Sequence record: NC_003214.2
Direction: 5' to 3' (one strand)
DNA: 40,900 nucleotides
Shown here: positions 5,145-40,222 of the stretch, piece after piece
How the letters are laid out: every line of letters starts with the position of its first letter
Position numbering within the stretch: position 1 is the stretch's first letter
The notes under the pieces: model-generated
Seen by the model: only the letters and a program-made list of their open reading frames with translations
What the model was told of the DNA's origin: nothing
Databases searched by the model: none
Translations under genes and position numbers: made by a program

Positions 5145-5711
5145 TTACCCCTTTTTCGTCTTTGACAGTGCTTCATATTGCGTCTTTAATTCTTCAAGTC
5201 GTGAAGGGTGTACTAGTGTTACCATTGGCTGGGGATAGTCTGATTGTTGTAGTGCTATACCTACTATCACTGCTCCATTCTTTAATTTCGGTACAACAGA
5301 CCTTAGCAAACTATAATAAACTCCTTGAGATGTTGAGAACAAGTACACCTCTTTTTTATGGTTATTTACCTCCTTTAGTAGATTAATTGGAATTGTTTGA
5401 TTGTTTACAATTTCTTTTATTAGTCTTTGTTCTAATTCGTTGTTATCTATTACATATCCGTCGATATAGCTTACTTGTGCTGGTTCATTACTGTTCTTTA
5501 GTATTACATCTCTTATTTCTACTTTCTTGATTATCAGCAGACGCCACAAATAGTTCTTTAGATTTTCCCTTTGAAATGGTAGTACAAACTCGTCGGATTT
5601 GGCTTCTTCAACCATCTCTATTTTTTGTGTTTCTGTGTTTGCTATTTCAACATTTTCTTCAGGTTCTTCTTGTTTTAACTCCTCTTTTATTTTATCTTTT
5701 GAACTTACCAT
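5145..5711 (-). CDS. Hypothetical protein (188 aa), acidic N-terminus, beta-rich core
   Basis: GGAGG SD; operon packing. Confidence 0.88.
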   Translation of the reverse strand: MVSSKDKIKEELKQEEPEENVEIANTETQKIEMVEEAKSDEFVLPFQRENLKNYLWRLLIIKKVEIRDVILKNSNEPAQVSYIDGYVIDNNELEQRLIKEIVNNQTIPINLLKEVNNHKKEVYLFSTSQGVYYSLLRSVVPKLKNGAVIVGIALQQSDYPQPMVTLVHPSRLEELKTQYEALSKTKKG

Positions 5712-5854
5712 TGTTTAATCGCCTCCTTGATTTCTTCAGGATATGAGTCATACAATTCGCAAAATTCTAAAAAAATTCTCTCACTTTGACTTAACGCCTC
5801 AAGGGGTAACCCTTGAGGGTTTATTATTTTTTGACATTCACCAAACGCGGGCAT
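5705..5854 (-). CDS. Small ORF (49 aa) MPAFGECQKIINPQGLPLEALSQSERIFLEFCELYDSYPEEIKEAIKQW, below the track cutoff
   Basis: Translated by hand; its stop overlaps the start of 5145-5711; lies below the promoter at 5885-5900. Confidence 0.65.
   Translation of the reverse strand: MPAFGECQKIINPQGLPLEALSQSERIFLEFCELYDSYPEEIKEAIKQW
5797..5818. other. Perfect GC-rich hairpin CCTCAAGGG-gtaa-CCCTTGAGG
   Basis: 9-bp perfect arms, 4-nt loop, followed by a T-rich tract on the + strand. Confidence 0.8.
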
Positions 5855-5884
5855 TTTTGTTCTATCATAAATTGTAGCACAATT

Positions 5885-5900
5885 GATATTTAAATTTTTC
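5885..5900 (-). promoter_or_regulatory. Early-type promoter (BRE-TATA) GAAAAATTTAAATATC
   Basis: Motif repeated upstream of nearly every gene in 5.9-9.5 kb. Confidence 0.85.
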
Positions 5901-5980
5901 TGTATGCGTTAGTTGTCTTCAGTAATGAGTTTCATGAGAAGAAAATTAAAAAAAAATACTGATAAAAAAAGGAAAGTAAA

Positions 5981-6133
5981 TTATTTTTCTCTTCTCTGTA
6001 GATATTCTTCTAGTGCTTCACGTATTACATCTTGTATTTTTTTATCATTTTGTGCACAATAAATTTTTAGTCTTGTTTTTAAGCTTTTCGGGATTGTAAT
6101 TCCAAATGATACTTTTTCTTCTTGTTCTGTCAT
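5981..6133 (-). CDS. Ribbon-helix-helix (CopG-like) regulator, 50 aa, not in the ORF track
   Basis: MTEQEEKVSFGITIPKSLKTRLKIYCAQNDKKIQDVIREALEEYLQRREK; AGGTGA SD; own promoter at 6165-6182. Confidence 0.9.
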   Translation of the reverse strand: MTEQEEKVSFGITIPKSLKTRLKIYCAQNDKKIQDVIREALEEYLQRREK

Positions 6134-6164
6134 TTTTTCACCTAAATATAATTTAGAATTAGCG

Positions 6165-6182
6165 GATATTTAAAACTTTTTC
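6165..6182 (-). promoter_or_regulatory. Early-type promoter GAAAAAGTTTTAAATATC
   Basis: Repeated motif ~32 nt upstream of ATG 6133. Confidence 0.8.
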
Positions 6183-6222
6183 TGAAAAGAAGTTTAGAAG
6201 AAAGGAGGATAAAAAAAGAGAT

Positions 6223-6561
6223 TCACTTTTTCTTTTCTCTCCATCCTTGAACTTCATAAATATATATTTTGTTGTCTTCTTTCCTATAAGTGAACTCTAG
6301 TTTGTACATGATATCATCGTCTTCATCGTATGTATATTGGTCTATTGTTATTCCATTACTAGATACACTGTTACTTGAATCATAGTTTCCGAGCAATTCC
6401 CTATATTCTTCTTCTGTCACCTTAAGTGGATCTTTGAATTTTATTTTGAACTCACTTACTTTTTCCATAAATAAGAAATCCAAGGCATCATCTAGATCAT
6501 CTGCTTCTGTCCAATCGTTTATTATATCTGATTCAATTTTTTCTAAATCTTGTTTTTCCAT
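6223..6561 (-). CDS. acrID1: DUF1374 / AcrID1-family anti-CRISPR protein (112 aa; SIFV ORF14-like)
   Basis: Very acidic; SEFKIKFKDPLKVTEEEYRELL and YKLEFTYRKEDNKIYIYEVQGWREK match the recalled AcrID1 pattern. Activity of this particular homolog is not shown. Confidence 0.75.
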   Translation of the reverse strand: MEKQDLEKIESDIINDWTEADDLDDALDFLFMEKVSEFKIKFKDPLKVTEEEYRELLGNYDSSNSVSSNGITIDQYTYDEDDDIMYKLEFTYRKEDNKIYIYEVQGWREKKK

Positions 6562-6594
6562 TTTAATTTCCCTAACATAATGTTCTTCTACTCT

Positions 6595-6612
6595 ATTATT
6601 TAAATCTTTTTC
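6595..6612 (-). promoter_or_regulatory. Early-type promoter GAAAAAGATTTAAATAAT
   Basis: Repeated motif upstream of 6561. Confidence 0.8.
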
Positions 6613-6652
6613 TTGATTTCTAGATTCTTAGATATAAGAGCAGAAGTTCATC

Positions 6653-6666
6653 GGAAAATTTAAATA
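6653..6666 (+). promoter_or_regulatory. Early-type promoter GGAAAATTTAAATA
   Basis: Repeated motif upstream of 6697. Confidence 0.8.
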
Positions 6667-6696
6667 TATGTTTTACGTATGTAGTAATGATCAAAA

Positions 6697-6996
6697 ATGG
6701 TTGATGTGGAAACAGTCGAGACAAAATATAAGATCATTTTGGATACACAAAGTAATTATGTATTAATGGAAGGGAGGCTGAAGGTAGAGGTGCGGATTAA
6801 AGGAAAACCTATAATATATGAGGTTCAGGAAGTGAGAAATATGGGGTATCTAATCGATATCACTGAACTTGATATTGCAGATACAAAACAACGTATTGAT
6901 AGTAAACTTTGTGAGAGACGTTATAAATATGTTAATAGCTTAAAAAATTTAGAAAAATTTATTAATTTTGTAGGAGCAGAAATAGAAGTTAAGTAA
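6697..6996 (+). CDS. MV(E/D)V...IEV family paralog 1 (99 aa)
   Basis: Aligns with 8273-8584 and 9149-9436; own promoter and T-tract terminator. Confidence 0.9.
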   Translation: MVDVETVETKYKIILDTQSNYVLMEGRLKVEVRIKGKPIIYEVQEVRNMGYLIDITELDIADTKQRIDSKLCERRYKYVNSLKNLEKFINFVGAEIEVK

Positions 6997-7120
6997 TTCA
7001 ATTTATTTTTTTTATGTTTTTCTATTTCTTATTTTTCTCATTTTCGTTATGATGTTTCTTTCTTTAAAATAGTTTCGTTGACTTTTTTAATATCGAGAAA
7101 TCGAGACAAAGAAGTATATC

Positions 7121-7134
7121 GAAAAATTTAAATA
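7121..7134 (+). promoter_or_regulatory. Early-type promoter GAAAAATTTAAATA
   Basis: Repeated motif; ATG 7158 lies 24 nt after the TATA. Confidence 0.85.
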
Positions 7135-7157
7135 CCCGTTTTATGTATATATTCTTG

Positions 7158-7895
7158 ATGTATGGGTTAGAAGTTAAACAACTCAAATTACTTTATAATT
7201 TACCTAAAGTTTTTTTAACACCAAATCTAAATAAATTTTCTATCACAAGAAATTATGTGGATTGTGCCTATTATGAGTCAAGAAGTGGGCTAACTAGAGA
7301 GGGCTGTATTATATTCGATGGTAATGTTCACAGAACACGTGGAATATATTATATTCCTGTACCGTCTGCTGTGGAACTATCATATAGAAGGAAAATGATA
7401 AAGGATGAACAAGATGTCAAGCAGATAATAGAGAAAATTAATCTTTATGGTGCTACTCTAAATACTAATAAGTTGTTAGTAAAGTGGAATAATTATGAAA
7501 TAATTCTATATGATCGGTTCATTAAAGGAGGAATGTATGAGTTTCCTTTACTGTTTAGTCAAGGACATCTATATGTTTACAACATCCCTAGGGTGAGGGA
7601 GGCATATAGGATTATCTATGAAAACGATAACCAAAAGGAGGAAATTGATAGTGAGATGTTTGAAGAGATTAACGAATTTAGCGTATACAATCATGCTATC
7701 AAGTTTGATAAGAAAGTGCTGAAATTAAAAGAATTGTATGTTTCACCTGGTCAAGGAGTAGTCATATACACACTAGATGACGTTACACTTGTTTCAGAGT
7801 CACCAGACCATAATAAAATTGAGAAATTTGTGTATAAGAATTCGTGGATACTGTTTTCACATCGTGCCCCACGTAACCAAGATCAAAGAGATTAA
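7158..7895 (+). CDS. Hypothetical protein (245 aa; leaderless start 7158 preferred over 7143), C-terminal SPDH...LFSH motif
   Basis: Long ORF; ATG 7143 is too close to the TATA. Confidence 0.9.
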   Translation: MYGLEVKQLKLLYNLPKVFLTPNLNKFSITRNYVDCAYYESRSGLTREGCIIFDGNVHRTRGIYYIPVPSAVELSYRRKMIKDEQDVKQIIEKINLYGATLNTNKLLVKWNNYEIILYDRFIKGGMYEFPLLFSQGHLYVYNIPRVREAYRIIYENDNQKEEIDSEMFEEINEFSVYNHAIKFDKKVLKLKELYVSPGQGVVIYTLDDVTLVSESPDHNKIEKFVYKNSWILFSHRAPRNQDQRD

Positions 7896-7946
7896 CATTT
7901 TTTTATGATTCTTCTTAATCGAGAAAAATGTTTCTAGAGATTTGTC

Positions 7947-7960
7947 GAAAAATTTAAATA
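7947..7960 (+). promoter_or_regulatory. Early-type promoter GAAAAATTTAAATA
   Basis: Identical to 7121-7134; ATG 7981 lies 21 nt downstream. Confidence 0.85.
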
Positions 7961-7980
7961 TTTATTTTGCGTATTTTTAA

Positions 7981-8211
7981 ATGATAAACATGGGTGGGAA
8001 AACATTAATTATAAATTGGGAAAACCCGTTAAATAGAGATGCATACACGGAAATAGGAAAATTGATGGTGTTAGTTTTGCCGTATGTAGTTAATATTGAG
8101 ATTGTAGATACTGAAGGTTGTATAATGGAAATAGATGATACAATAGAAGATGAGATAAAGGAGTTAAGTAGATTCTTAAAGTATGTTGAAGTGTCTTTTG
8201 CAGAAGAATAA
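7981..8211 (+). CDS. Small acidic hypothetical protein (76 aa), anti-defence candidate
   Basis: Own early promoter; acidic. Confidence 0.85.
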   Translation: MINMGGKTLIINWENPLNRDAYTEIGKLMVLVLPYVVNIEIVDTEGCIMEIDDTIEDEIKELSRFLKYVEVSFAEE

Positions 8212-8272
8212 AAAATAAGCTATCCAATTTTTTTATAATATAAAAAGAGAAAAATAAAAAAAATAAATTAAC

Positions 8273-8584
8273 TTAGTTAACTTCTATTTCGGCACCTATC
8301 ATTTCCGCTATTTTTTCGAGTGTCTTTAACACATTCACGTATCTCTCAAATCTTTTATTTAGAGTTTCGTCAATATCTCCTTTAACATCTGTCACTTCAT
8401 TCTGTATCTCATTCTCTGTAATAGTTTGCATATTTCCCATAAATTTTTCTTGTTTGTCCCTGTATTTTATTTCACTCTCCTTAACAGTTATTATAGCTTC
8501 TATCGTTCCTTCAAGCGTTATACTATCGTCCCTTGTGTCGATAATCAATTTGTATTTTATTGTTTTTTGTTTCACTTCTACCAT
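8273..8584 (-). CDS. MV(E/D)V...IEV family paralog 2 (103 aa)
   Basis: KYKLIIDT...LEG...RYVNVLKTLEKI...GAEIEV shared with 6697-6996. Confidence 0.9.
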   Translation of the reverse strand: MVEVKQKTIKYKLIIDTRDDSITLEGTIEAIITVKESEIKYRDKQEKFMGNMQTITENEIQNEVTDVKGDIDETLNKRFERYVNVLKTLEKIAEMIGAEIEVN

Positions 8585-8612
8585 GTTTGGTCGATTGTAT
8601 ATTAGATAAAGA

Positions 8613-8628
8613 GATATTTAAAATTTTC
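8613..8628 (-). promoter_or_regulatory. Early-type promoter GAAAATTTTAAATATC
   Basis: Repeated motif upstream of 8584. Confidence 0.85.
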
Positions 8629-8727
8629 TGTGTCTTTCTCCTTATCGATTTTTCGTCCTAAAAATTCCATACGATAAAAATATTATCAGAAACATGAGAA
8701 CAATTAGAAATAAAAAAAAGGAGAAAA

Positions 8728-9012
8728 TTATTTTTCATAATTAGAATATATAAGATTTATAAGGGGTGATATCTCTTTTTCATGTTTTTTTAGTATGTCT
8801 AGGACATACCATTGATCATTATAGTCTTCAGGTTTTGCTATTATAAACAATTTTACTAATTTTTCCATAAATTGAATCCCTTTTATATGTCCAAATCTTT
8901 CATACCACCACTGTATGAATTCAACATTTTCTGTAGACATATAAAAAAATTTATCATTAATTTTAACATATTTTTCCCCAAATTCTATCTGTTCATTTAT
9001 CTGTTCATTCAT
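8728..9012 (-). CDS. Hypothetical protein (94 aa), anti-defence candidate
   Basis: Own promoter; GGGGA SD. Confidence 0.85.
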   Translation of the reverse strand: MNEQINEQIEFGEKYVKINDKFFYMSTENVEFIQWWYERFGHIKGIQFMEKLVKLFIIAKPEDYNDQWYVLDILKKHEKEISPLINLIYSNYEK

Positions 9013-9044
9013 ACTTCTATCCCCTAATTATCATTAGAAAAATA

Positions 9045-9060
9045 GATATTTAAAGATTTC
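9045..9060 (-). promoter_or_regulatory. Early-type promoter GAAATCTTTAAATATC
   Basis: 24-bp identity 9042-9065 = 9462-9485. Confidence 0.85.
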
Positions 9061-9148
9061 TCTATTTTTTGATTCATGAAAAAATGGATAACTTTCCAGA
9101 TAATATCCAAAACTTGAAAAAAATTACGAATAAAAAAAAGAAATTGGC

Positions 9149-9436
9149 TTAATCAACTTCTATTGTTAATCCTGATTTTTCTAATTCATTCAGACCTTCT
9201 TTTATTTCGTCAATTCTTTTGTCTAGTTCTTCAACAATTCTATTTATCATGTTTTTTACCTGGTCTGTTTTTATTGTTTCCACGAATCCTATTTCTTTTA
9301 TTGATGAAACAGCGTATGGCATTTCACTGTCTTTTACGTTAAAGATTACTTTTGTTTCACAGTCAAGACTTACAATACCATTTACGGAATTTATTTTTAT
9401 CTTGCATTCGATTTGTTTCTTTACTACTTCAACCAT
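9149..9436 (-). CDS. MV(E/D)V...IEV family paralog 3 (95 aa)
   Basis: Same N-terminus, beta-strand pattern, C-terminal helix and terminal IEV as the other two. Confidence 0.88.
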   Translation of the reverse strand: MVEVVKKQIECKIKINSVNGIVSLDCETKVIFNVKDSEMPYAVSSIKEIGFVETIKTDQVKNMINRIVEELDKRIDEIKEGLNELEKSGLTIEVD

Positions 9437-9464
9437 TTTTGGTCATTAATACATTAGACACATA

Positions 9465-9480
9465 GATATTTAAAGATTTC
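9465..9480 (-). promoter_or_regulatory. Early-type promoter GAAATCTTTAAATATC
   Basis: Duplicate of 9045-9060. Confidence 0.85.
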
Positions 9481-10014
9481 TCTATCTTTCTTTTTATCGA
9501 ATTTTCGTTTTCAATTATGTGGAAGGAGTTGGAATATTATTTCAAAATCGAAAACAAGTTTGAGTACTAATTTATCTACTTTTTTTTCTGTATTTTGAGA
9601 GATATAAATTCAATCCCGGCTGCAGAACAATTTTTGTATCTTATTGTATTTTTATCTGTTTTTTTGTTTGAATACTAATTTGTTCACTTAATTTAAGGAA
9701 ACAAAAAAGAATTCAAACAAAAAATCTATTGTTTCAAATATTATTTTAATGACTTTATAATTTATACGTAAAAATAATCAGAGTGTAACGTAATGAATTG
9801 GATAAATTTCTTTTAAAAGAGTTTTCTGATTTGGGCTAACCCAAACGATTAAAGTTTTTTCTTTAAAAATGATTTTACGCCGTTATTTTCCCTAATTTTA
9901 AGGAGAGTTAAGGGCAAAAGTGGAAAATTTTAGGTTTAAAAACTTTTCTAGTAAAATAACGAGTGTGGTTAAAAAAGATTTTTGTATCCAGAGTGAAACT
10001 AATACTATCTTCTT

Positions 10015-10218
10015 TCAATTATCCATAAGATTTTTCTGGGTAACGAGAGAAAAATTTTTTATTATTTTTGGGATATTTTGAATCGGAACATAATTGAATA
10101 TCTCTACTGAACCATTTCTTATTAGCTTCACGCTAACAAACAAATTATCATCTTTTATTTCGATATTTAGTATCTCATATTCTTCTTTCATAGAATAATA
10201 CTTATTCAGTATTACCAT
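10015..10218 (-). CDS. Hypothetical protein (67 aa), possibly a remnant
   Basis: Protein-like composition, but no intact early promoter at normal spacing. Confidence 0.6.
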   Translation of the reverse strand: MVILNKYYSMKEEYEILNIEIKDDNLFVSVKLIRNGSVEIFNYVPIQNIPKIIKNFSLVTQKNLMDN

Positions 10219-10297
10219 TTAAAGCAAAATTCTCGATATTACCTTATATGGTGTAATATTATCCAAAACTTGAGAAATATAGTGAATAAAAATAAGT

Positions 10298-11977
10298 TTA
10301 ATAATGAATGGTGATTATTCCATTATACTCATTTTCGATGAAATTCATTTTTTTCACCGATTGTTTTATGAATAAATCATGGTTATAAATGACGTCCAAT
10401 ATGTAACCTTTTCTTTTATTTTGTGATACTCTCATTACTCTACCAATACGTTGGATTAATTTAATTCTACTTTTTCCTTGCGTTAATAATACTACTAACC
10501 TTAGATTTGGAATATCTAAACCTTCATCTGCTAAGGAAGTCGATATTAATACTTGTAACTTTTCATTTTTCAAAGCTTCAATTTTTTCCATCCTTTCTTC
10601 TAGTTTTGTCTTACTTGATACCCAATCGGCAATAATTCCATTTTCTCTCATTATTTCGGCTAGTTTTTTAGCTATTGCTATTCTCCTTACAATTACCAGA
10701 CAAGGGTATTGGTTTAATTGTTTTATTTTGCTAATGATTTGCTTGTTTGTATTTGGTGAATGCTCAAATGATCTTAACAGTGAAGAGTAATATTTAGCAA
10801 AATTTTCAGGGTCTTTATTATCATCTAAATCCTGTATCTTCAATTTCAGTTTTTTAGGAATTTCTGGAATATATCTTATATATTCAATAGGAACTAAATA
10901 TCTATTTCTCACAAGTTCTGTGTAGTCAATTGTAAATGATATTTTTCCTAGTAATCCCATAATTTCTAGTTCTTTCCCGTCTTCTCTGATAGGAGTAGCA
11001 CTTAACCCCAATCGTATTGAATTTGGTGAATCCAGTAATAACGATTTTACAATATTTGCAGGTGTGTGGTGAGCTTCATCTATTATTACTAAGTCTGCAT
11101 TAGTTACTAATTCTTTCAGTTTTTCATGTTCATTTCTCTTCTTTTTCGAATAATAATAGGAAATTGATAATGCTATAAAATCACTCCTTTCTCCTTTTTT
11201 TATTTCATCAATTTCTCCTGATACTAATACAAAAGGTAAGTCTTCTTTTTTGGCAAAATTCTGGAATTGTTTCAGTAGAGTAGTTGAGTTGACAGCGTAT
11301 ACAATTTTTGCATTATTCTTGTTTTTTAGTATTTCTAAAGCAGAAAGGATAGCAATTACAGATTTTCCAGATCCTGTAGGGGCTTTTATGATTCCGTTAC
11401 CAATTACATTAACGTCACTAACCCATGATTTTATACTATTTATTTGGTAGTTTCTCATCTCAAAGTTCTTTAATTGAATATCGTAAAATCTTAAGTTAGT
11501 AAAAGGCTTTAGATCAAAATTAGCTATATTTTTCAATTTCCAGTATAACCCCCTTAGTGTTACAAATCCATAGCTTTTTTGCCACGCTAATAATATTTCT
11601 TCTTCTGTATACTTTCCTTCTTTATAGTCAAACGTTTTTATTTTATAAGTTAACAAGTTTTTGTATTTTTCCAGATTATCACGAATATAGATGTAATTTC
11701 CCTTTATGTATGCATTTATGATGTTATTATCATCCTTAATATAATTTGAGAGTATATTATAAATAGAGTTTCCAATATATTCCGCAATTTGATCTATTAT
11801 TCCTTTTAGTTCATCTTTTGTTAATCTACTTATCTTGTATTCATTGATATACCATTTTTTAGTTGAAGGATCAAAATTAGCTATCTCTCTCATTAAATTA
11901 GTGTAATTCAAAAAATCTTCTCTTGACAAATATTTATTTGGAGATGGTAAATATATCTTGTTAATGTTTTGCGTCAA
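10298..11977 (-). CDS. SF2 helicase, XPB/Rad25-like (559 aa, TTG start)
   Basis: APTGSGKS, DEAHH, SAT, STSLADEGLDIP, QRIGRVMR; N-terminal FDPSTKKWYI (HARP-like). Confidence 0.95.
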   Translation of the reverse strand: MTQNINKIYLPSPNKYLSREDFLNYTNLMREIANFDPSTKKWYINEYKISRLTKDELKGIIDQIAEYIGNSIYNILSNYIKDDNNIINAYIKGNYIYIRDNLEKYKNLLTYKIKTFDYKEGKYTEEEILLAWQKSYGFVTLRGLYWKLKNIANFDLKPFTNLRFYDIQLKNFEMRNYQINSIKSWVSDVNVIGNGIIKAPTGSGKSVIAILSALEILKNKNNAKIVYAVNSTTLLKQFQNFAKKEDLPFVLVSGEIDEIKKGERSDFIALSISYYYSKKKRNEHEKLKELVTNADLVIIDEAHHTPANIVKSLLLDSPNSIRLGLSATPIREDGKELEIMGLLGKISFTIDYTELVRNRYLVPIEYIRYIPEIPKKLKLKIQDLDDNKDPENFAKYYSSLLRSFEHSPNTNKQIISKIKQLNQYPCLVIVRRIAIAKKLAEIMRENGIIADWVSSKTKLEERMEKIEALKNEKLQVLISTSLADEGLDIPNLRLVVLLTQGKSRIKLIQRIGRVMRVSQNKRKGYILDVIYNHDLFIKQSVKKMNFIENEYNGIITIHY

Positions 11978-13714: not shown

Positions 13715-13798
13715 TTTCTTTCACATATACTTTCTCGTGATTTAATTTATATATTTATTTGAGAAAGATTTATATAGTTCTTTTGTATATGCTATCAT

Positions 13799-35287: not shown

Positions 35288-35606
35288 AAATCGTTTTCAG
35301 AATATCCTCAAACCCTGGAATAGATTTAAATACACGTGCTATATCCTCTGGTTTGTCATATTTTAAAAGGTAATCAGGATGAGCAGTTAATATCAATTTC
35401 ATTATAGCCAATTTATCCTCATCTGGTATCCTATTGGGATCGAACCCTATTAATTGCTCAAACATATACAATAATGTAATATCCACATGATTACCCCTAA
35501 GCCATTTAATAAGTGCATCAATAATGTGTATCTCAGCTTCGGAAAATTTAGAATTATGCCTATCAATAATTTTTTCGATCCTATCTTTTACAGGGTAATA
35601 ACTCAT
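35280..35606 (-). CDS. Helical hypothetical protein (108 aa)
   Basis: GGTAGG SD-like sequence; TATA upstream. Confidence 0.85.
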   Translation of the reverse strand: MSYYPVKDRIEKIIDRHNSKFSEAEIHIIDALIKWLRGNHVDITLLYMFEQLIGFDPNRIPDEDKLAIMKLILTAHPDYLLKYDKPEDIARVFKSIPGFEDILKTIFT

Positions 35607-39658: not shown

Positions 39659-39685
39659 GATAAAAATAAGAGAAGAAAAGGGTAT

Positions 39686-40222
39686 TTAAATCTTTTTCGC
39701 GTATTTCACAAATCGAGTTATATATCGTCTAGGATACGCACAATCAAACTTCTTAAACTCGTTAAACATGGAAGTTACAACACGAAAATGTAGGACATCA
39801 TGAACAAAAAAATCAAGATAAGGATATGAAACAAGCTTAACTAAATTACTTTCTATAAGATACTTAGAACACTCTTTGACATGGATTTTGGATGCTTTTA
39901 TCGATGAAAGCGTAGGATAGACATATTGTTTAAAAAGATCAGAGTAAAGATTATAAAATATTTCAGCATGCTTAAAACATTTATTACCAGCACAAGAAAT
40001 ATCATAAGTTAGCAAATATTTATTAGAAAGTGGTTCTGGTACGTTATATTCGATGTAAATTAAACCGTTATTATAATCAATTTCGAAACTTGACTTACGC
40101 AATGTAATAAATAGATATAAGCCAAAAGAAGGACATAAAAATTTGAATCTATCAGGACTGAAATGAATATCAAAAATAGAAGAATGTATACCATGACGTA
40201 ATAAAGAAAGCAAACTGGGCAT
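39686..40222 (-). CDS. Hypothetical protein (178 aa)
   Basis: Long ORF; start uncertain. Confidence 0.75.
   Translation of the reverse strand: MPSLLSLLRHGIHSSIFDIHFSPDRFKFLCPSFGLYLFITLRKSSFEIDYNNGLIYIEYNVPEPLSNKYLLTYDISCAGNKCFKHAEIFYNLYSDLFKQYVYPTLSSIKASKIHVKECSKYLIESNLVKLVSYPYLDFFVHDVLHFRVVTSMFNEFKKFDCAYPRRYITRFVKYAKKI

Follow-up and report, generated by a model that had tools for sequence, protein, structure and literature searches.

What is the function of an 11-nt, CG-containing box that stands at a constant distance upstream of several viral promoters, and which protein might read it? The window analyzed here is the complete 40,900-bp genome record of the archaeal virus SIFV (Sulfolobus islandicus filamentous virus, AF440571.2 / NC_003214, Betalipothrixvirus), as identified by blastn; the nearest relative compared is SIFV2 (KX467643), which is approximately 84% identical across the island region concerned. 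A first-pass annotation had listed three copies of the box, each at 22 nt from the TATA sequence TTTAAATA, and a half copy at 7920 with the same offset, and this part of it holds in coordinates, strands and distance. The relevant sites are:

Box copy 1, CGAGAAATCGA: 7094-7104, plus strand; positions -33 to -23 before the TATA box of promoter P16 (SIFV0016).
BRE (CGAAAAA) and TATA box TTTAAATA of P16: 7120-7134, plus strand.
Half box, CGAGAAA: 7920-7926, plus strand; promoter P17 (SIFV0017), TATA box at 7953-7960; block 1 of the module described below is kept alone, identically in SIFV2.
Box copy 2, CGAAAAATCGA: 8645-8655, minus strand; promoter P18 (SIFV0018), TATA box at 8615-8622.
Box copy 3, CGAAAATTCGA: 9497-9507, minus strand; promoter P20 (SIFV0020), TATA box at 9467-9474; a paralogue of P18.
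TCGA half only: 39713-39716 (box offset 39713-39723), minus strand; promoter of SIFV0074 at the other genome end, TATA box at 39683-39690; not retained in SIFV2.

All four box promoters of the island combine a purine-rich BRE with TTTAAATA. The BRE of P16, 26 nt further downstream, is a repeat of the initial 7-8 letters of the box, and CGAGAAATCGA, taken with the preceding T, can be read as two tandem 8-nt units that both begin with TCGAGA. TCGA cores 8 bp apart are found in P16 and in two uncultivated virus contigs (L009 and L127, see below); P18 and P20 display CGA followed by TCGA, and P17 displays one core. The box is absent from five of the nine SIFV island promoters (P12-P15 and P19).

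The pattern CGARAAWTCGA matches exactly three times in 40.9 kb, against 0.09 matches expected from shuffles, and with every TTTAAATA in the genome taken as an anchor, all three copies are followed by 22 nt and then TTTAAATA. Because the pattern had been written after the copies were seen, a pattern-free test was used on 11 TATA-anchored promoters, counting any 11-mer window at any shared offset in which three members agree within 2 mismatches. Such an agreement arose in 0.0002 of independent shuffles, and in 0.0014 of those in which P18 and P20 were shuffled together and their paralogy was thereby kept. The box with its 22-nt spacing is beyond chance (p about 0.001, corrected for the offset search and for the P18/P20 duplication), and its position is locked to the TATA box of several promoters, as had been claimed. 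P18 and P20 are a duplicated promoter-plus-gene unit (107 nt, 75% identity, repeat family D3), whose ungapped match stops one base past the box; hence there are at most three independent instances in SIFV, namely P16, the half copy of P17, and P18/P20. A CG at exactly -33 is also seen on the plus strand at 13736-13743 (CGTGATTT; TATA box at 13769, promoter of SIFV0026) and at 35292-35299 (CGTTTTCA; TATA box at 35325), in sequences otherwise unlike the box.

The genes behind these promoters, and one regulator candidate of the same island, are the following:

SIFV0013: 5981-6133, minus strand; 50-aa ribbon-helix-helix (RHH) protein of the SvtR/56B family (Pfam PF21432, 56B_RHH, E=1.3e-20).
SIFV0016: 7143-7895, plus strand; AcrIIIB1 homologue, gene of P16, 43% identical to its SIRV1/SIRV2 homologues (SIRV2 gp48).
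SIFV0017: 7981-8211, plus strand; gene of P17.
SIFV0018: 8273-8584, minus strand; gene of P18, orthologue of SIFV2 gp15 (AcrIA).
SIFV0020: 9149-9436, minus strand; gene of P20.

Supplementary Data 1 of Bhoobalan-Chitty et al. (Nat Commun 2024, PMC11065993) lists SIFV0014 as AcrID1, SIFV0016 as AcrIIIB1, SIFV0015, SIFV0018 and SIFV0020 as family ADG.56, SIFV0017 and SIFV0019 as ADGs, and SIFV0013 as "ADa", an anti-defence-associated "SvtR/Arc-like repressor". For the ADG.56 member SIFV2 gp15, inhibition of subtype I-A CRISPR-Cas has been shown experimentally (PMC11065993). Our Pfam analysis likewise assigns SIFV0014 to DUF1374, the AcrID1 family, and the genes behind the box promoters were found to be Acr homologues or clustered small accessory genes. 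They are unrelated, as the first reading of the locus had it, and their promoters belong to a class expected to fire early, with the timing of early transcription being known for SIRV2 only (PMC11065993). A single-protein query returned no relatives of SIFV0016 from IMG/VR; an alignment query returned SIRV1, SIRV2 and L009 only, and three loci were found among metagenome contigs, of which L127 is the informative one.

As to the start of SIFV0016, the annotated ATG at 7143 lies just 8 nt past the TATA box (7127-7134) and for this reason is not on the transcript. The ATG at 7158, which yields 245 aa, is likely the true start and would fit a leaderless mRNA. SIFV0017 looks leaderless too, with 28 nt from the first TATA base to its ATG.

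Strong promoters of this type have been described before. Archaeal viruses carry a "consensus regulatory sequence" ahead of anti-defence genes (ADGs) that are expressed early; it is composed of a strong BRE, TTTAWATA and virus-specific flanks (Bhoobalan-Chitty et al., Nat Commun 2024, PMC11065993). SIFV is among the showcase genomes of that study, and the consensus sequence of SIFV2 has been published likewise. For the motifs, which were 30-100 wide, the 100 bp ahead of each start codon were used (PMC11065993), and the box falls into this span; the text, in the part available, singles out no CG box at -33. The likeness to our data extends to the same genes of the same genome (SIFV0013-0020), with strong BRE, TTTAWATA and common flanks. 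Such conserved promoter cassettes are the best current handle for anti-CRISPR and other anti-defence genes in archaeal viruses.

The box is one part of a larger unit. When the 33 nt that precede the TATA box are divided into four blocks of 8 nt and one remaining base, they form a module of purine-rich, mostly T-ending blocks, the last of which serves as BRE; the box covers block 1 and three letters at the start of block 2. From its upstream end, the whole cassette consists of the distal element, the box, two more purine-rich blocks of which the second serves as BRE, then TTTAWATA and a short leader. The module aligns ungapped and in register between SIFV, SIFV2, SIRV1, SIRV2 and five uncultivated rudivirus-like contigs (L009, L064, L067 and L102 from IMG/VR, L127 from a metagenome), in block alignments of 23 and then of 46 unique promoters. 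Most of the 112 loci matched by a core-promoter pattern in IMG/VR are chance, and only contigs of 24-25% GC were used. An HMM built from rudiviral promoters only, with three box-bearing members removed, matches SIFV at 7090-7142 (E=1e-4) and places the box on the rudiviral consensus. With the full rudiviral HMM, further matches that start at the box are obtained in P20 (E=9e-4) and P18 (E=0.02). Flanks common to several single-gene SIFV promoters are seen in the repeat families D2, D3, D4 and D6, in the block alignment and in the HMM matches.

The constant 22-nt spacing is explained by this alignment, since the module was inherited ungapped rather than evolved separately at each promoter. The first-pass annotation had argued that duplication does not explain the box; this argument is not supported in that form, as the promoters themselves constitute a single family of cassettes that has spread irrespective of the ORFs and whose homology to the early promoters of rudiviruses is in register. 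The cassette moves independently of the ORF behind it. The module common to SIFV and rudiviruses points to exchange of genes and promoters between two virus families. We consider it probable that the box is the SIFV version of the upstream end of the ADG promoter cassette module, with a role as regulator docking site or, alternatively, as an inherited relic under weakening selection. It is a known kind of element and no new site, because it represents the far end of the published cassette common to rod-shaped Sulfolobus viruses. The idea of a separate, SIFV-specific site for a host factor is not supported.

A CG starts at -33 in 19 of the 46 distinct strong promoters and at -25 in nine of them, compared with at most 5 and mostly 0-3 at other positions between -70 and -1 (about 1.4% per position). 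Because CG is concentrated at these two positions, the block is retained far past the age at which unconstrained DNA still aligns. Part of the frequency at -33 reflects shared descent, since it is tied to one promoter subtype (AAAAC before the TATA box). In SIFV, SIFV2, L009 and L127, every CGARAAWT with a TTTAWATA within the next 80 nt lies 33 nt (box) or 7 nt (BRE) ahead of it; in five Acidianus viruses the pattern stands at neither of these distances. Lags 8 and 16 of the module are raised (z of 2.5-3.6, about 2.6 for lag 8), and other even lags comparably so, owing to the alternation of A and G; this modest signal is not used as evidence of an 8-nt period.

A serious alternative, although one we regard as rather unlikely, is that the box is plainly functionless: residual similarity from recent duplication or recombination of promoter cassettes, too young to have eroded, with P16 and P17 having acquired the same 5' end. 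This is consistent with the end of the P18/P20 duplication unit one base past the box, with the homology between SIFV P16 and SIFV2 P13 beginning just upstream of the box, and with the five of nine island promoters that do without it. However, the viruses that retain the block in the same register share proteins of only 33-57% identity, and the box is 9-11/11 identical where the 22-nt spacer is about 40-50% identical. The excess of CpG at -33 over its background points in the same direction.

Comparison with SIFV2 and environmental relatives bears on this question as well, since erosion of the box would be expected of a relic. In the SIFV2 orthologues of P17 and P20, the box is unchanged, and so are its flanks. 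In SIFV2 P13, the orthologue of P16, TAGA replaces TCGA. In SIFV2 P15, the orthologue of P18, box positions 1 and 8 and adjoining bases are changed, making the box the least conserved stretch of a promoter with 90% identity elsewhere. The same T-to-A change, at 8648, is frequent in contigs of two hot-spring metagenomes, along with a SIFV2-like 12-nt insertion just upstream; no change is listed within the P20 box. A strictly kept quasi-palindrome is thus not what is found: two of the four SIFV2 orthologues, and environmental variants as well, no longer have the symmetry. The Acidianus betalipothrixviruses AFV3, 6, 7, 8 and 9 lack the box altogether and have strong island promoters with other upstream sequences.

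In the same hot-spring contigs, coding parts of SIFV0018, of SIFV0020 and of the SIFV0015 region are skipped or swapped for unrelated sequence (8294-8562, 9123-9467 and 6680-7201, with joints at 8294/8562, 9123/9462 and others), and the flanking promoter and terminator regions are 80-95% alike. This looks like cassette exchange at conserved intergenic modules. Short contigs of one further run (X1) cover 7481-8935 at 100% identity to SIFV, every one of them with a strand-switch joint, such as those at 7893/7932 and 8891/8935. This library is labelled as mouse gut metagenome, and it is probably mislabelled or contaminated, as the label does not fit a hot-spring virus.

The closest relatives of the box outside SIFV lead to the regulator gene aca8. 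The search for the motif in related viruses and the host genome that had been suggested for this locus succeeded among viruses, with the exact box in L009 and L127; cellular genomes of the Sulfolobales are missing from the exact matches. Among the proteins encoded by L009 (29% GC) are a homologue of AcrIIIB1 and a methyltransferase resembling SIFV0065. This contig carries CGAAAAATCGA at the same offset before the gene of a 55-aa HTH protein, whose identity to SIRV2 Aca8, in its 55-aa form, amounts to 57% (E=4e-24). L127 has CGAAAAATCGA, again at the same offset, before its own Aca8 homologue. The aca8 promoter of SIRV1 displays a near-exact box (CGAAAA-T, with some bases given as N), and that of SIRV2 reads CGAGAGATACA. 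In addition, the upstream flank of P20, ATTGAAAA-CGA (ATTGAAA-CGA), is common to the aca8 promoters of SIRV1 and SIRV2, and SIFV 8608-8719 is 72% identical to the aca8 promoter region of L009 (blastn).

A scan of IMG/VR for the box followed by 22 nt and TTTAWATA gave three matches, of which L009 alone resembles an archaeal early promoter; the other two, in a giant-virus MAG of 27% GC and a contig of 44% GC, were taken as chance. In the SIRV1 record of IMG/VR (L124), several box bases of the aca8 promoter at about 1230-1245 are stored as N, which is why the exact-pattern scan missed this promoter.

Searches for Aca8 itself (phmmer, two Aca8 queries, six-frame ORFs of at least 30 aa) gave no match at E<=1 in SIFV and SIFV2; nor did phmmer detect it in AFV7 (whole genome) or in AFV3, 6, 8 and 9 (island regions of 8.5 kb). 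An aca8-type upstream module thus stands on several anti-CRISPR promoters of SIFV, yet there is no aca8 gene in this virus. This is the single point that goes beyond the published work (PMC11065993), in whose available part Aca8-less viruses have differing regulatory sequences. SIFV is grouped there with such viruses of diverse regulatory sequences, whereas in our alignment its module is in register with that of Aca8-encoding rudiviruses. The remainder is a rediscovery of part of the published regulatory sequence. The definition of the cassette is sharpened in that it reaches to -33, has a position-locked CG first and is the same module as in Aca8-encoding rudiviruses, and this sharper definition is usable for motif-based gene discovery. 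It raises the concrete question of what reads the module in a virus without Aca8.

To judge from the sequences compared, docking of a regulator is the probable, and the most likely, role of the box. We tentatively suggest, at somewhat below even confidence, that the block would be the docking site of a small virus-encoded regulator of the Aca type. Bound there, such a protein might silence the strong early promoters once the first phase of infection is over. For rudiviruses, the HTH protein Aca8, whose own promoter bears the box, would be the candidate. The Aca operators of bacteriophage anti-CRISPR promoters (those of Aca1 and Aca2 among them), and likewise the control over early genes of SIRV2 that has been proposed for Aca8, resemble the present case in their short repeats, in the strong early anti-defence promoters concerned, and in the presence of the box in the promoter of the regulator itself (aca8 in L009, L127 and SIRV1). 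Bacterial Aca sites are inverted repeats that overlap the -35/-10 elements or the start site. In contrast, some 55-63 bp separate the box from the expected start downstream of it, its symmetry is only that of a quasi-palindrome, and SIFV is without aca8.

For the latter reason the site in SIFV would have another reader than Aca8. Pfam finds no significant DNA-binding match among the island proteins besides SIFV0013, which makes this only recognizable DNA-binding protein of the island a candidate Aca-like regulator. The reader in SIFV would most plausibly be this SvtR-like RHH protein, whose family typically recognizes short repeats in tandem; the box, read as two 8-bp units with TCGA cores, would be a site of that sort. 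Two adjacent short units with the same core are an arrangement typical of RHH operators. Tandem 8-bp operators of this kind are represented by the met-boxes of MetJ and the ATAGATAG repeats of SSV1 F55 (see also the review PMC5569661). The box can be likened to these if it is read as two adjacent 8-bp units with a self-complementary TCGA core, and the RHH gene SIFV0013 lies within the island; it differs in that the lag-8 signal is modest and the second core is absent in P17 and SIFV2.

The promoter of SIFV0013 is without the box, and for this reason autoregulation of the RHH gene via the box is not seen. The box does not fit the published operator consensus of SvtR, AvtR or Sta1. The SvtR consensus ATnnTTCAAnAnnnnnAAAATG has 0 matches in the genome at up to 2 mismatches, which is fewer than chance, and neither ATnnTTCAAnAnnnnnAAAATG nor the AvtR consensus ATnnTnnTAnnACnTT has an exact match in the island promoters from -80 to +48. 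Candidate readers in SIFV, as far as gene content and operator layout allow us to propose them, would be an SvtR-like RHH protein or Aca8 supplied in trans.

The second of these candidates touches on a further reading, namely that the box is the Aca8 operator itself, kept by the aca8-less SIFV on several anti-CRISPR promoters. Judged on promoter likeness, we take this to be distinctly unlikely; a literature search found no mapped Aca8 binding site. If it were so, the usual shut-off might fail to reach the anti-defence genes of SIFV. The alternative consequence would be their repression in trans by a co-infecting rudivirus, which would amount to cross-regulation of two virus families in one Sulfolobus cell.

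The original proposal was a different one, namely that the box is phased with the TATA box and possibly bound by a host transcription factor, which would turn on an immediate-early subset before viral proteins are present. Such a role would be analogous to that of the winged-helix host activator Sta1 on SIRV1 promoters. On one of these, Sta1 protects a core-promoter site and a second site about 30 bp upstream (Kessler et al., 2006, PMC1635249); the box has this geometry too, in a virus of the same host. Box and TATA box are about 31 bp apart from center to center, that is three helical turns and not two as had been stated, and this phasing would suit such a factor. As SIFV lacks Aca8, a host protein is conceivable as reader.

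Against this stands a search for the exact architecture (box, 22 nt, TTTAWATA) in 185,579 prokaryotic species with one genome each. All 54 matches are bacterial except for one Methanosarcinales MAG, and none belongs to the Sulfolobales. Furthermore, the loose Sta1 consensus ATNT-N8-WNAT never overlaps the box in any island promoter, despite a density of 2.7 matches per kb. Among the island promoters, this consensus matches upstream of a TATA box just once, on the distal element of P18. Targets examined for Sta1 have been structural and other genes, not those of the ADG island (PMC1635249). Moreover, SIFV2 infects the same host species, and orthologous promoters of this virus can dispense with the box; strong BRE/TATA cores of the ADG type equal those of highly expressed host genes, which have no upstream box (PMC11065993). 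We therefore regard a host factor as quite improbable, and neither the match counts nor the Sta1 consensus bear out the claim of the first-pass annotation.

Upstream of the box, the cassette contains a further conserved part:

Distal element of P18: 8676-8701, minus strand; approximately 25-40 nt, roughly TTCTCAAGTTTGnGATAATATT / TTTTTCTCAAGTTTGnGATAATATTTC.
Further copies of the distal element: near 9531-9560, 9100-9140 and 10253-10292 (all minus strand), and possibly 7035-7060 (plus strand).

The element also occurs in L009 (10770-10808 and 10420-10455) and in promoters of SIRV1, SIRV2 and L127. Located 30-45 nt upstream of the box, it follows the T-run behind the preceding gene's stop codon, and in L009 it holds the perfect palindrome CTCAA-GT-TTGAG. 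The distal element may be a terminator module or an operator.

The distal element also enters the last explanation to be weighed, in which the box would mark a start of transcription, either antisense from the near-symmetric TATA box or from a weak upstream TATA-like ATAATATT within the distal element. TCGA lies about 24-27 nt from the TATA center on the opposite strand, with purine-rich sequence on the other side of the TATA box in P18-P20, and it lies 30-34 nt downstream of ATAATATT in P18, P20, L009 and L127. The antisense version fails for P16 and P17, because the sequence after their TATA box is pyrimidine-rich, and the 12-nt insertion between distal element and box in SIFV2 P15 speaks against a start set by ATAATATT. 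A search of sequencing runs turned up no RNA run containing this stretch. We regard a start site at the box as highly improbable.

Two observations on the sequence around these promoters may be added. A non-coding gap of about 580 nt (9437-10014), which SIFV2 has too, lies upstream of P20 and holds an inverted repeat at 9660-9724 with 32-nt arms, 84% complementary and separated by 1 nt; an Rfam scan of 5500-10500 at E<=1, this repeat included, returned no match. In P18, P19 and P20 (8600-8637, 9032-9069 and 9452-9489), the TATA box is flanked by purines on both strands (GATA-TTTAAA-G/A on the plus strand), so that these cores could take TFB in either orientation, with divergent transcription as a possible consequence.
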